Below, in pieces: positions 7,101 to 19,100 of a DNA stretch of 33,941 nt. The stretch lies in the NCBI GenBank assembly GCA_033442325.1, contig JAWQFM010000006.1, positions 1,961,361 to 1,995,301 on the forward strand, in the 5' to 3' direction. Every line of letters begins with the position of its first letter. The stretch's first letter is position 1. Origin of the DNA: Salpingoeca rosetta (Eukaryota; Protista; Choanoflagellata). The notes beneath the pieces were generated by a model, which ran no database searches, was not told where the DNA came from, and worked only from the letters and a program-made list of their open reading frames with translations. A program made the position numbers and the translations under genes.

Positions 7101-10100
7101 GCATGGCCCGCCCAACGCTCGGCAGGCGGCCAGCAGCACCATCCAGTCCGCGATAGTGGCCCACGTCCTGCTGCACATTGTCCTCGTGGAGCGGGTTCAT
7201 TGGCACCTCGTGGTGGTCCAGGCCAGTGGCCACGCCCAGGTACAGGCTGTGGCGGTCCTTGGTGGGCGATGCGACAATGTGGCCAAACTGCTGCTCGCGC
7301 CGAAGTGCGTCCTCGTGCGCCTGCAGCTCCACATCCCGCTTGCGTCGCTGCTTCCGGCGATGCACCAGCAGCAGCACAACCAGCATGATGAGCACCACGC
7401 CGCCAACCACGGCAGGGACAATGGGAACAATGAGGGCAGTGGACCCCTCCGCTCCCGGTGGCGCCAGCGACACCGTTGACGATGTCGACGCGGCGGTTAT
7501 CGTCGTCGTCGTCGTACCAGTCGCAGGCGGCGCTGTTGTTCCCGGCCCAGCGGTCGTGGTCACAGACGGCATTGGTGACGCAGCAACCTGCGAGCCTTCA
7601 AAGTTGACCTTCATCTGGTCCTGCTGCACCGCATACGCGGTTTGGTCTGCAGAGCGGCCGTCAGCGTGCACGACATCCACGCCCACGCTGCCGCGCGAGA
7701 ATGTGATGCGCACCACCAGCGACGGCGGCACCCCCGCAAACCGCCACAGGCCGTCCAGGACAGCCGCCTCCAGCGCAGCAAGGCGCGTGGCATTGCCCAC
7801 AATTGCGTCATAGTCCAGCGGCAGCAGGAACGACGTTGTCAGGGGCTTCTCGTCCACGCTGCCGGGTTGATCACACACGCTCGTGTTTTGCACCACGCCC
7901 ACCAGCGGCGAGTAGCCCTGGGGCTTTGATACGGCAGCCGCCACGTGGGCGCCCTGCCGTGCTTGACCGTTGCTGTCAGCGGCAAAGGTGACGTTGGCGA
8001 GCTGCGAATCCAGCGCGGTGTCATAAGCAGGGGCATCGTCCACGTGACGGGTCATAAACAGGAGCCGGTCAGGGGAGAATGCGCCCTCCGTCGACACGGT
8101 CAGCTGCACAACCGAGACGCCCCCGCTGATGTTGGTCGGTGGCGTGTCACCCAAGGGAATCACCGTGCGATACAGCGACGGCGCAACGGCAAAGGGGACA
8201 GCGGCCTGAATCCACGCGCCCGCGTATCCGTCTGGTTTCCCCGGTGACAGCAGATCTCCAGCCAGTGGCTCCGCGAGTGTCCAGTTGGCTCGCTGTGCGT
8301 CGCCGGAACCCGCTGCTGGCTCAATGTCGAACACGATTGCAGTGTCGGTTGGACTCGCAGCTTGGTGCGACGCAGTGAGCGCGAGCACAGACACCTCCAG
8401 CAGGCAGCCGTCCGGGGACGGCAGCACTCGCACGCGCGGCGCAGACACGAAGCGCAGCAGGTCAAAGTTGACGGCTGCAAGGAAGGACACATCCAGCACA
8501 TCAATGTGACCATTGACATTGGCGTCCATGACGCGCTTCTCGTCTGCCGACAGCGAAGACCGGTTCACGGCGGGATCCACAAGCTCGCGGCCAAGGAAGC
8601 GAAGCAGGGCGCCCGCGTCCTTGATGTCAAACACGCAATCGCACAGCACATCACCCAGCATGCGCGGCTCTGGGCACGATGCAGGGTCGCATGGCGTTGC
8701 ACGCCGTGCACGCAGCAGTGACTCGCTGTCACGGGCAACACGACCATCAGCAGCGGCAGCAGCAACAGCAGTCGCCGTGGTGTCGACGGCACTGTCACGA
8801 CGACGACGACGACGACCGGGGGTGCTGGCCGTGCATGGTGTGGTGGTGGCGTTGCTTGCAGCCGTGCCGATAACAACATCGACGCTGCCAGCAACAATAG
8901 CACGCGGTGTGGGCGCGCCAATGGTCAGCTGCTGTGATGAGGCATCAGCGATGGTGTTCACAACGCCGTGAATGGCGGTGATGCATCCAGAAGTAGAGTT
9001 GGCACCATTCTCAGGCGCAAGAACGCGGAAGCGGAGCGTGGCGACGGTCAGGACGCCAACCGCAGCATTCTTCTGCAACAGGCCGCCAAAGGATGCCACG
9101 CCCGGTGGGCTGTTGAGAGAAGCCACAAACACGCCGCCTTCCCACAAGGACGACGTTTGTGCAATGGAGACCGCCTGAAGGATGGTGGGGTCGTACACAA
9201 TATCGAGATCAAGGGCTCCCAGCACACTGGCACCAGCGCTGACGCGCACGGGCACGTCGAATGTGGCGCCCGGCTGCTGTGCCGGCACCGGCACCCCAGA
9301 CAGCGACCCGAGATCAACATCCCCATCCCCGGCTTGCAGGTTCGCAGCAAACATCCGGCTCCCCATCGCGCCTCCTACCGTGGCCCGCACCACATACTCA
9401 AGCTCAACAGCGCTGTTCCCAAGCAGCGTCACTGCGCCACTCGCGCCGTCAACCGCAACGGCCCCGCTGCTGTCGCCCCTCACAGAGAACGCCACCAGCC
9501 CACCAATGCGTGCGCTCCCGCTCCCGCTCACATCAATCAGGTCAGCGTACTTGCGCCCGTCGCTCAGCACAACGTCCACCTGGCCCCGTGACACGTGGCC
9601 CACCACACCAACCACCGTCCCCGCAAGCGTCAGGCCCTCAAACCCAACAACACGCACAGACGTGTTGGTGGCAGCAACGTCGGCCCGCGCCACAAACTGG
9701 CTCACTGCGCCAGCCACGCGCGCCTCCACGCTCGCGTTCCCAAACGCCGTGCCAGCACCCGTGTACGACACAACCGTGCCGCTGCTCACACGCACCACAT
9801 CGCTTCCAGCAACCACGGAGTAGCTCACCACAGCCCCGTCCGTGCTCACGTCAACGCGCTCGCCGCTCGTCAGCACCAGCACCGTCTCCAGCACAGCCTC
9901 CTGCCACACCCCCGTGTCTGCGTATTGCTGCAGCTGGTGCACCTCCACACCACGGGAGCCGGCGTACGCGGGCCACGGCCGCAGCCGCGCCTCCACGCTC
10001 GCCGTGCCGACAACGGTGATGTTGATGCTGTGCGTCACGCTCACGTGGCTGAAGCCGATGGTCAGGGTGCCTGTGCCCGTGAGGCCGGCGCTGTTGGTGG

Positions 10101-16100: not shown

Positions 16101-19100
16101 AAGCACACGCCACGACGTCGCCGTCGTTGTTGGACACAGTGATAGGTGTGCTGTCCTCATCAAATGCAACGAGCGACACTGGCGAGTTCACGGCTTCGCC
16201 CGTCAAGACGGCGCTGTTCACCAGTTGGGCGGCAGGGATCATGGCAGCAAAGCCAACGGTCTGTGCTGGCGCGAGGAACACACTCGCGTCGCCCACACGC
16301 ACGCCATCGCGGCCCGATGACACGGCAGCCACTGGCGTCACGAGTGGCTGCTGCTTCTCCACGTTGAACAAGCTCAACACCGTACAGCTGAGAGCCACCT
16401 CCGCCGCTGTTGTGGCGCTTGCGTTGGCGCCCTGTGTCCATGCGTCCTGTGGCTGCACCGCAACCGTGAGGGTGAACAGGAGCTCTTGCTCTGGCGCAAG
16501 CTCGGGGCGGTCGCCGAGTGGCAGGCCGTTGCCGACAACGGTGCTGGTGCCCTCACCTTGCACTTGTCCATCCCACGCGCTGTCCACGCTCATCTGCGTG
16601 ATGACCAGCTTGTCTGCATCGTCAGCCACGCTGCAGCGGACCTGCCACGTGTTCACGGGGTAGTCACCGCCCTGCGCATACACGGGCACCTGGAACGTTG
16701 CGCCGGGTCGCACGGGCCTGTGCGGTGCACTGAACCACACGCCACCGCTCCCAGCAGCGCCAGTGGCCATCAATGGAGAGGAAGCCGGCGCTGTGGAGAG
16801 CGGCAGTGGCGGCGACGACACCTGCTGTGTGGGTGTGGAGCCAAGCCCATACGTCACTTGCACAGCGCGCTCTGTGGTGTTGGAGAACCACTCCTGTGGC
16901 ACCGACACCCGCGCCCAGCAGGCGCTGCGCGTGGTGCAGGATGCCGTGACAGCCGGCACGGACGAAGTGAAGTCGACCGGCGTGACTGCGATGGACACTT
17001 GCGTCTGCTGCGTGTTTGTTGAGTGCAAGGCATCCCGCACAACAAGGTGCACGTTGACCTGGGGCGCATCGTGCCACAGCCGCTGCGTGGCCACTTGCGC
17101 TTCCACGCTGACAGCGGGGCTGCGCTGGAGGGTAAACGCCGCCTGCGCCTCGGAGTCGCCAAGCACAGCGCGCAGGTTACCGTTGTCGGCGTTGAGTGCA
17201 TCGACAAACACACCCACTTGCCCGCGTGTGCCTGCCGGCGTCACCGTTGGCAGCTGTTGCTCAAGGAGGTAGCCCAGACCCGTGTTGCTGTTGACGGTGG
17301 CGAGCGGCAATGTCGCGTCTGGTATGCGCCCGCACTCGCGATCTGACGTGGCCGTGGGCAGGACTAGCTCCACTTCGCCTGGCTGGCACGCGGTCAGGTT
17401 GGCGCAAACCGTGTCCTGCAAGATGGTGCAGGCTGTCTTCGTGTACATGTCGCTTGTGCACACGGTGCAGTTGTCACACACGCGGTCACTTGTTGGTGTG
17501 GGCGCGGCGTCCTGGAATGTGCCCGGCTCACACGGGCCGCGGATGCGGGCACAGTCGCGATCGGATGTGGGCGTGGGCGCGGTTGTCTCGTACTGCGTAG
17601 TCGTGTTGCACTCACGCACGCGCTGGCACACGCGTGCGCTGCTCAGCGTTGGCGGGTCAAGCTCGAAGAACACGTTCGTGTCGCAGGCCGGAAGGCTGAC
17701 AAAGCACTCGAGCGAGGACGTGGGGTTGGCAAACAGCTGGAGCGGGTGGTATGGTGTCGTCAGGTCAAACGTGTAGGAGGTGGCGGGTCCAAGCTGCAGC
17801 TGATACATGAAGGGACTCCCAAACTCCACGGCGCCGGTGCTGTTGGAGATGCGCACAGCACGCGAGTCTGATGTCTGCGGCGGGCTGCTCTGATCCACCG
17901 TCACCTGCAGGATGGTGAGGCCAACGTCACCGAGGTCAAGGCTGGTGAACATGTCTACGCTGTGTGGCACGGGTGTTTCGTTGTCTCCCATGTCATCACC
18001 GCCTGAGGGAACCGCCGCCTCAGCTTGGAAGATGGCGCCGTTGAAGGTTGGCGCACCCTTGTCGGCGACGACCACTTGACCACGGGTGACTGCGCTATTG
18101 TCAAGGGCCGGGCGCAGGCCCGTGTCGCGTGATTCCACGTCGAAGAACAGGAACGTGCGCTCTGGATCGGGGACGGTGTTGCCAGCACCCAGGGGCGTCG
18201 CTGAGATCCTGAGCTGGCACGCCACGGCTGCATCTGCTCCGGAGGCAGGCGACTGCGCCACCGGCGTCACCGTCACGTTGGTGATGAAGTGCAGCTGCTT
18301 GAAGAGGACGCGGATCAGGTACACGGGATCAAAGTCATCCACACGCCCGTTGATGTTGGCGTCCATCTGTTCATAGCGGTCTCGGCTGTAGTCGCTGCCA
18401 AAGCTGGGGTCAAACGTGCGCTTGGCCAGGAAGGATTGCACGAAGCGCACATCTGCGAGCGTGAAGCAGCAGTCCTCGTTCGCATCGCCCAAATGGCGGC
18501 CACCAGCGCACGGCAGCCCCGTGCACGGGGCATCGCCAGCGCGGCGGTGGCGCTCACGTGGCGCAACAACAGGGAGCAGGCTCCGGCTCCAGCCCACGTC
18601 ATCGCTGTCGCTGACGTCAAGGCCAGCAGCGCTGCGGCGACGACGAAGGTTGCCGTCGAGGATGACCATGGAGACGTTGCCAGCAACAAACGCGGTGTCA
18701 GGCGCCACAATGTCGAGGGATGCATCGTCAATGAGCTCGATGATGGTGCCGCCGAGTGTGATGAGGGCAGGCGGAGCAGCGTCATCCGCAACGCGGAAGC
18801 GAAGCACGGCCACTTCCTGCGAGGAGCCAGACACGCCGTCTGTCGTCCCGCCAAAGAGGAGCACGCCAGGGGGATCGTTGGGGGTGACCAGGAAAAGGCC
18901 TTGGCCATAGGCGGAGCCCTGTGTCGCACTCACGTACTCGAGCACATCGGGTGGATAGGTGACCTCCAAGCGCAGACCAGCCACCACCTTGGCTGTGCTG
19001 GTGAGGCGCACGGGCACGTCGAATGTGGCGCCCGGCTGCTGTGCCGGCACCGGCACCCCAGACAGCGACCCCAGATCAACATCCCCATCCCCGGCTTGCA

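Follow-up and report, generated by a model that had tools for sequence, protein, structure and literature searches.

The stretch analysed here, called the window below, comprises 33,941 nucleotides of contig JAWQFM010000006.1 (assembly GCA_033442325.1) from Salpingoeca rosetta, a member of the choanoflagellates, the close single-celled relatives of animals. All coordinates count from its first letter. On its minus strand lies a stop-free open reading frame (ORF) of 6,020 codons (6439-24501), predicted to encode a type I membrane protein, along which a cassette of cohesin, linker and dockerin recurs three times, each time with a pair of basic sites in the linker. We consider below whether each cassette may be a joint that is cut by a convertase and held closed by its own two modules.

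From its N-terminal side, the protein comprises a somatomedin-B domain, a Thr-rich stretch, an EGF array, three TMEM132-like modules with the cassettes, a single transmembrane helix (amino acids (aa) 5694-5718; 7348-7422, minus strand) followed by a basic stop-transfer signal (HRRKQRRKR), and a tail of 298 aa. Pfam also matched TNFR-type Cys repeats along the 6,020-aa protein and detected no cadherin repeats in it. By chunked self-BLAST the three modules are paralogous, about 1,630 residues each and with 25-35% mutual identity, and every one of them terminates in a cassette. Tandem TMEM132 Ig domains occur in the order 4th, 5th, 6th: Pfam matches all three in module 1 and the 4th and 6th in module 2, and in module 3 it gives weak sub-threshold matches to the 5th and 6th, with the 4th undetected. 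Modules 1 and 2 have a 4th domain that clears the cut-off; most of the matches to the 5th and 6th fall slightly short of it. The N-terminal conserved region of TMEM132 and its cohesin-like (3rd) domain were not detected by Pfam in this gene; PF23039 was weakly matched in one of the relatives treated below (P0039).

The three cassettes align to a single layout: a cohesin, an RRRR run, a spacer, a second site of the form R-x-R-R/A, a Cys-containing lead-in, and the two Ca-loop-plus-helix repeats of the dockerin. All of their elements lie on the minus strand. In the first cassette, cohesin 1 (aa 1793-1952; 18646-19125) runs into RRRR/S (aa 1953-1956; 18634-18645), and a spacer of 31 aa leads to RHRR/A (aa 1984-1987; 18541-18552) and to dockerin 1 (aa 1988-2080; 18262-18540), with its Cys-containing lead-in and two Ca loops. 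The second consists of cohesin 2 (aa 3441-3593; 13723-14181), RRRR/S (aa 3594-3597; 13711-13722), a 25-aa spacer with a poly-Q run, RARR/A (aa 3619-3622; 13636-13647) and dockerin 2 (aa 3623-3725; 13327-13635). The third has cohesin 3 (aa 5047-5229; 8815-9363), RRRRRR/D (aa 5230-5235; 8797-8814), a 32-aa spacer, RARR/A (aa 5264-5267; 8701-8712) and dockerin 3 (aa 5268-5359; 8425-8700). The first sites of all three linkers were located by motif search in the translation. Between the paired sites, the spacers of these three cassettes (25-32 residues) have no sequence conservation.

A first-pass annotation, made from the letters of this DNA, had placed three polybasic runs in one receptor, and all three stand where it put them, on the minus strand of one uninterrupted frame. 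It described each run as coming directly after a cohesin, which is correct, and as followed at once by a two-loop dockerin; the dockerin does lie beyond the run, at a remove of about 32-38 residues to its start and about 50 residues to its first Ca loop. The single site that it assigned to each joint is also present, and is accompanied by a second, invariant site before each dockerin, hence the sites are paired. In the ectodomain, 6/6 matches to R-x-[KR]-R fall inside the three linkers, the sole other match in the protein being the cytoplasmic stop-transfer signal. Because shuffled versions of the protein give an expected 0.037 RRRR runs against the three loci observed, a chance origin of these runs is excluded.

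Module identity and predicted binding

The cohesins were recognised directly: all three exceed the curated cut-off of the Pfam family Cohesin (PF00963; 24.1 bits), with E-values of 4e-13 for cohesin 1, about 1e-19 (combined) for cohesin 2 and 1e-10 for cohesin 3. Family profiles were built from 17 aligned paralogues of the cassette in this genome, and the cohesin profile, which applies to cohesin 1 as well, matches solved scaffoldin cohesins (best E 8e-9). A single-chain AlphaFold2 (AF2) model of cassette 2 shows both modules at high confidence and the linker at a predicted local distance difference test score (pLDDT) below 50, with a predicted template-modelling score of 0.76. Cohesin 2 itself exceeds a pLDDT of 90 and resembles in fold the nine-stranded jelly roll of solved cohesins, and its top 50 Foldseek matches are all cohesins (template-modelling score on the target up to 0.75).

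For the dockerins, it is the family profile and the predicted fold, rather than Pfam alone, that point to their identity. The curated cut-off of Dockerin_1 (PF00404) is 22.9 bits; among the three dockerins of this gene only dockerin 2 gives a match, at a sub-threshold 19.8 bits, and dockerins 1 and 3 have no Pfam match alone, so that the Pfam check suggested by the first-pass annotation was passed by its cohesins and not by its dockerins. The same Pfam model is matched individually by 14/17 of the genome paralogues (best E 4e-9). In searches with the dockerin family profile, solved type I dockerins rank first (4dh2_B at 1.2e-8; 4fl4_A at 1.8e-7, over both repeats; 1ohz_B at 2.9e-6), and calmodulin appears only at 0.01 or weaker. 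Modelled alone, dockerin 2 reaches a pLDDT of 91.4, and its 21 best matches in the Protein Data Bank (PDB) are all dockerins, with template-modelling scores of 0.65-0.86 and root-mean-square deviations of 2.1-3.5 Å; the Foldseek E-values are weak (0.09-0.7 over about 70 aligned residues) because the domain is small. Two 12-residue EF-hand-like loops with helices are present in 3/3 dockerins, and the Ca-ligand Asp residues are invariant across the 17 paralogues. Pfam cohesins, family profiles and fold matches together bear out the assignment of these modules as genuine cohesins and dockerins.

All cassettes, for example that at 13530-13640, have conserved cysteines: some precede the dockerin (P-C...C), and another occupies position 6 of Ca loop 1 (GDxNGDC). 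Position 6 is Gly in bacterial dockerins and Cys here, and the pattern suggests a disulfide staple particular to eukaryotes. Ca loop 1 of dockerin 3 (8560-8600; aa ~5302-5314) carries an extra Cys.

When cohesin 2 and dockerin 2 were submitted to complex prediction with two Ca ions, the score was 0.64, and the highest of three controls reached 0.04. This mark is attained by 51/78 solved complexes and by 2/108 mismatched pairs. The runs agreed in at least 85% of contacts, with a pLDDT of at least 83 for the partner, and the predicted interface is the canonical one, in which both dockerin helices lie against one face of the cohesin sheet.

Because the complex prediction did not use the alignment, covariation provides an independent check. 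It was computed over 221 natural cassettes, of which this genome supplied 17 and 150 diverged proteins the other 204. Ranked by strength, the first five covarying pairs between the two domains lie in the predicted interface (5/5), as do nine of the top 30, against a background of 3.3% (Mann-Whitney p = 5e-12 for the enrichment). The strongest pair is size-compensating: Gly at cohesin position 88 goes with Phe at dockerin position 90 in 125 cassettes, and V, L, A or S at cohesin position 88 is paired with A, V or S at dockerin position 90. With a leave-one-out contact potential over 25 model contacts, the cognate dockerin stood at a mean percentile of 0.729; the control, 20 sets of non-interface columns, gave 0.542 ± 0.035 with a maximum of 0.608. 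Since the interface columns outperform the non-interface ones, the coupling is specific to the contact and does not reflect shared ancestry only. By these alignments the cohesin co-evolves with the dockerin that comes next in the chain, and the complex score and interface covariation both agree with the earlier proposal in predicting that the pair binds.

Within this gene, the dockerin interfaces of the three clasps are 11-22% identical, compared with 28-36% for whole modules. In a 3x3 matrix of the contact potential, clasp 3 favours its own dockerin (0.96 vs 0.43 and 0.10); clasps 1 and 2 are left unseparated, and the cognate pair of clasp 2 scores low.

Paired basic sites in the linkers

Among 18 aligned copies of the cassette in this genome, the position of the first site is kept in 17/18 and the R-x-R-R of the second in 18/18, around a hypervariable spacer of 0 to about 60 residues. 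A wide HMMER search with the cassette returned 8,869 proteins at E <= 1e-3 and 351 at E <= 1e-30; the statistics use the best 150, the majority of which aligned across the entire cassette. In the 204 linkers of these 150 relatives, R-x-[KR]-R occurs at 108 times its density in the remainder of the same proteins, and [KR]R at 25 times. A dibasic motif lies at the cohesin end in 167 linkers, at the dockerin end in 162 and at both ends in 153. The polybasic sites singled out in the first-pass annotation are in this way conserved and position-specific in paralogues and distant relatives, and the cohesin-site-dockerin unit, for which it suggested searching other proteomes, does recur in diverged proteins.

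The genome also encodes a convertase, an ORF (L022) that combines Peptidase_S8 with a P-domain (P_proprotein), and at least three P-domain loci score above cut-off. The six motifs of the present protein are conserved in relatives and lie in linkers that are predicted to be disordered and exposed (pLDDT below 50).

One trivial origin of the RRRR runs, as a by-product of GC-rich codon bias, was rejected: their flanks have diverged to 25-35% identity and the sites have been retained. It is also contradicted by lower-GC relatives, which hold KR or RR at both positions.

A proposed cut-and-clasp joint

The evidence in hand comprises the identity of the modules, the conservation of the sites, an interface that is predicted and at which the partners co-evolve, the pairing of each dockerin with one cohesin throughout the genome, and a gene for a convertase. 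From it we infer binding in cis, cleavage in vivo, persistence of the complex after cutting and a physiological use, and in our judgement the balance tilts slightly towards each cassette being a closed, cognate joint of this cut-and-clasped kind, which would leave the receptor in four parts that are held together.

In the endoplasmic reticulum, with Ca2+ present, each cohesin would engage the downstream dockerin of the same chain through the canonical contact, the two being tethered by a disordered linker of 45-60 residues. Late in the secretory pathway, a kexin/furin-type convertase would cut after RRRR and again after the R-x-R-R ahead of the dockerin, and the double cut would free a spacer of 25-32 residues, three such spacers per protein. 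The mature receptor would then consist of four non-covalent subunits (aa 1-1956, 1988-3597, 3623-5235 and 5268 to the end), joined by three cognate clasps, with the last subunit anchored in the membrane. Such an ectodomain could be separable by force or by loss of Ca2+, and might serve as a mechanical fuse or in regulated shedding. Judged from the site positions, cutting would indeed yield the four subunits of the first-pass annotation, the inner two bearing a dockerin at the N-terminus and a cohesin at the C-terminus.

Several points weigh against this proposal. The high complex score may owe something to recall, by the model, of cohesin-dockerin structures already solved, and no riding ligand was present in the calibration set. 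The covariation would fit pairing in cis and pairing between two copies of the same protein alike. None of the gene's own dockerins passes the Pfam cut-off, and Ca loop 1 of dockerin 3 is degenerate, with Leu at ligand position 3 where the family has Asn or Asp; this loop may bind Ca poorly, or a disulfide may stabilise it in place of Ca. Many relatives have plain KR or RR at the sites and not the full furin consensus, and the protease class is therefore given as kexin/furin-type and not as furin specifically. RNA support is nearly nil: about 45 million reads of three RNA-seq runs from one study were scanned on positions 13000-18999, and 3, 13 and 4 reads were found over these 6 kb, many of them on CAG/CTG repeats. 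Finally, no signal-peptide exon was identified upstream, where the only candidate Met, at 24924, is weak, and an assembly gap of 796 N (26164-26959) lies about 1.7 kb upstream of the ORF.

The evidence for binding and co-evolution would fit equally well if the clasp were never cut and formed a rigid intramolecular joint with an intact linker loop, the basic motifs serving in, for example, the binding of acidic glycans or membranes; the barely detectable expression is also compatible with this. The linkers speak otherwise. Paired site positions are kept around a freely varying spacer throughout the 204 linkers, at the 108-fold density given above and as KR in lower-GC relatives, and this arrangement of position-specific sites about a variable spacer is the signature of convertase sites and not of a charge patch. 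A convertase is moreover encoded in the genome, and the linker is predicted to be disordered and exposed. We regard an uncut clasp as unlikely, although it is the alternative that we take most seriously.

Whether the proposed joints are closed is a question on which the other copies of the cassette bear. With the cassette profile, about 10 giant ORFs of this genome were found to hold at least 17 complete copies. Searches of the genome with dockerin-only and cohesin-only profiles returned 21 confident dockerins, each lying 100-1,000 bp downstream of a same-strand cohesin, and no orphan cohesins or dockerins among the confident matches genome-wide. Among the relatives, a dockerin without a preceding cohesin occurs in only 6/210 cases. 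A cellulosome is built on a scaffoldin that recruits many separate dockerin proteins, and here all dockerins adjoin their own cohesin; this strict, adjacent, one-to-one pairing therefore favours cognate, closed joints over a cellulosome-type network.

Some individual copies deserve mention. Loci L007 (G000:C5:1865921-1866886) and L008 (G000:C12:50985-51950) have near-identical protein sequences on different contigs, which reflects either a recent segmental duplication or assembly redundancy. At L016/L019 (G000:C24:800392-801950), the cohesin and dockerin are about 1 kb apart and in different frames, so there is probably an intron inside or near the linker. Four relatives of about 1,400-1,600 residues (P0039, P0050, P0056, P0094) align over one full module plus cassette at about 28% identity; as all of them are on contigs of about 5 kb, they may be fragments and not true single-module proteins.

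The strict pairing also tells against open assembly in trans, in which the subunits would swap partners, form head-to-tail polymers or link cells, to give a cellulosome-like filament or network. The dockerin and cohesin ends of the middle subunits would permit head-to-tail chains, the covariation is compatible with pairing between copies, and the 3x3 potential shows no orthogonality of clasps 1 and 2. However, the genome has no orphans and its pairs are strictly adjacent, exceptions among relatives are confined to the 6/210 dockerins given above, and co-evolution proceeds pairwise; the dockerin interfaces of the three clasps are less alike than the modules that carry them. A tethered pair in cis would form first, and bacterial cohesin-dockerin complexes dissociate very slowly. 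Open assembly in trans thus appears improbable to us, and the partner swapping, polymers, cell bridging and cellulosome-like filament pictured in the first-pass annotation are not borne out, given that no orphans exist among the confident matches genome-wide and that partners co-evolve pair by pair. A related speculation, which we hold to be a long shot, is a four-link chain with joints of differing strength or code, from which force or a fall in Ca2+ would release defined segments of the ectodomain; these, with their dockerin and cohesin free, would re-dock on the same joints of neighbouring molecules or cells to make a reconfigurable adhesion filament.

Two further readings deny the cassettes any working contact. 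If the modules were relics, their folds kept as non-binding spacers and any cleavage merely shedding pieces of the ectodomain, one could understand why two of the three dockerins fail Pfam alone, why loop 1 of dockerin 3 is degenerate and why clasp 2 has a low contact-potential score; but the complex prediction for that same clasp is far above its controls, the interface covariation shows selection on the contact, and the Ca-ligand Asp is invariant in 17 paralogues, which makes this reading quite improbable. Least probable of all is a silent or decaying gene with nothing operating in living cells, for which one could cite the handful of RNA reads in about 45 million and the 5' end beside an assembly gap, and against which stand an 18-kb frame without any stop, the conservation of all three modules at the domain level, an apparently recent 1-kb conversion tract that preserves the frame, and the dependence of choanoflagellate adhesion gene expression on life stage.

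Related systems and the ends of the gene

Cohesin-dockerin pairs are the very strong, Ca-dependent connectors of bacterial cellulosomes. The cassettes described here share with the bacterial type I complexes (PDB 1OHZ, 2CCL, 4FL4, 4DH2) the same two folds, the duplicated Ca-loop-plus-helix dockerin and the predicted mode of interface. They differ from them in being eukaryotic, in having the partners as neighbours in one chain with a putatively cleavable linker and strict one-to-one pairing, in the extra conserved cysteines before and inside Ca loop 1, and in the lack of carbohydrate-active enzymes. Both modules are also found on one polypeptide in bacterial adaptor scaffoldins and in small bacterial proteins (~200 aa) with a cohesin and a dockerin, of which there are many in the Atlas; the cohesin-plus-dockerin clusters obtained from it were all of this small bacterial kind. 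The cohesin and dockerin of an adaptor scaffoldin bind other proteins and not each other; in contrast to the present cassettes, those of adaptor scaffoldins are without convertase sites and do not occur in giant eukaryotic receptors. As a speculation, the small bacterial proteins may be the evolutionary source of the cassette.

Receptors that are cleaved but held together include Notch, with its S1 furin cut in the heterodimerisation domain, the GAIN-domain adhesion G protein-coupled receptors, the SEA-domain mucins and the furin-processed FAT1 cadherin. They are the closest analogues in function, and the logic proposed for the cassettes would be the same: a cut in the secretory pathway, parts held non-covalently and a force-sensitive joint. 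Unlike in those receptors, the holding device here would be a separate two-module connector of bacterial type, present three times in series, and two predicted cuts would excise a spacer.

Nearer in sequence are animal TMEM132 and the choanoflagellate and sponge cadherins with cohesin and TMEM132-type modules (coherins, lefftyrins, hedglings), which share TMEM132 Ig domains and cohesins with this protein. The proteins most closely related to it are cadherins that carry these modules and cassettes too, whereas this protein has EGF and TNFR-type repeats and no detected cadherin repeats. Sanchez-Pulido and Ponting (2018; PMC6030884) described homologues of cohesin in TMEM132 and noted the same architecture in cadherins of choanoflagellates and sponges; they found dockerins undetectable in vertebrates and, for these proteins, reported neither a dockerin nor a cleavage site. 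The full-text literature that could be searched yielded no account of a eukaryotic unit of cohesin, cleavage site and dockerin, and within that literature the arrangement is as new as the first-pass annotation supposed.

We know of no partner reported for the eukaryotic cohesins, be it in choanoflagellate and sponge cadherins or in animal TMEM132. In the cassette, a candidate partner adjoins the cohesin, co-evolves with it at the predicted contact and is separated from it by conserved convertase-type sites, and the cassette is widespread: it is present about 21 times in this genome, and hundreds of protein clusters from elsewhere contain it. If the proposed joint is real, it would give eukaryotic cohesins a function, reveal a new modular route, near the origin of animals, to force-sensitive adhesion receptors of the cleaved-but-held type, and provide natural connector pairs, orthogonal to one another, that function in the secretory pathway of eukaryotes.

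Some features of the gene and its surroundings remain to be described. Modules 1 and 3 share a tract of 1,006 bp (19002-20007 and 9240-10245, minus strand; aa 1499-1834 and 4753-5088) that is 99.4% identical, with six mismatches and no gaps, between flanks of only 25-40% protein identity. It stops about 40 residues inside the cohesin, ahead of the interface strands. Recent gene conversion within the gene would account for it, or else an effect of assembly.

It is the open frame itself that suggests an intronless reading of the gene. The poly-Q (CAG/CTG) run in spacer 2 (13651-13671) draws partial RNA reads, along with chimeric pieces of contigs from other parts of the genome, and apparent joints at 13671 were rejected as splicing, being repeat artefacts of this run. 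A fourth sequencing run, probably of DNA, is colinear with the assembly and without joints. Upstream of the ORF lies an in-frame (AC)n microsatellite (24502-24770).

The signalling tail that the first-pass annotation gave to the receptor was not recovered in this ORF: Pfam recognised no domain in the 298-aa tail and likewise nothing credible in the downstream minus-strand ORFs. Tyrosine motifs do occur further downstream, in another minus-strand frame (4106-5500, 464 codons), which has no Pfam match and holds four GYLDV[SAT]P repeats, a GYVHVQP variant, a YINV motif (Grb2-type YxN), and acidic and poly-Q runs. To judge from these motifs, this frame could be a candidate for a spliced phosphotyrosine tail of the receptor.

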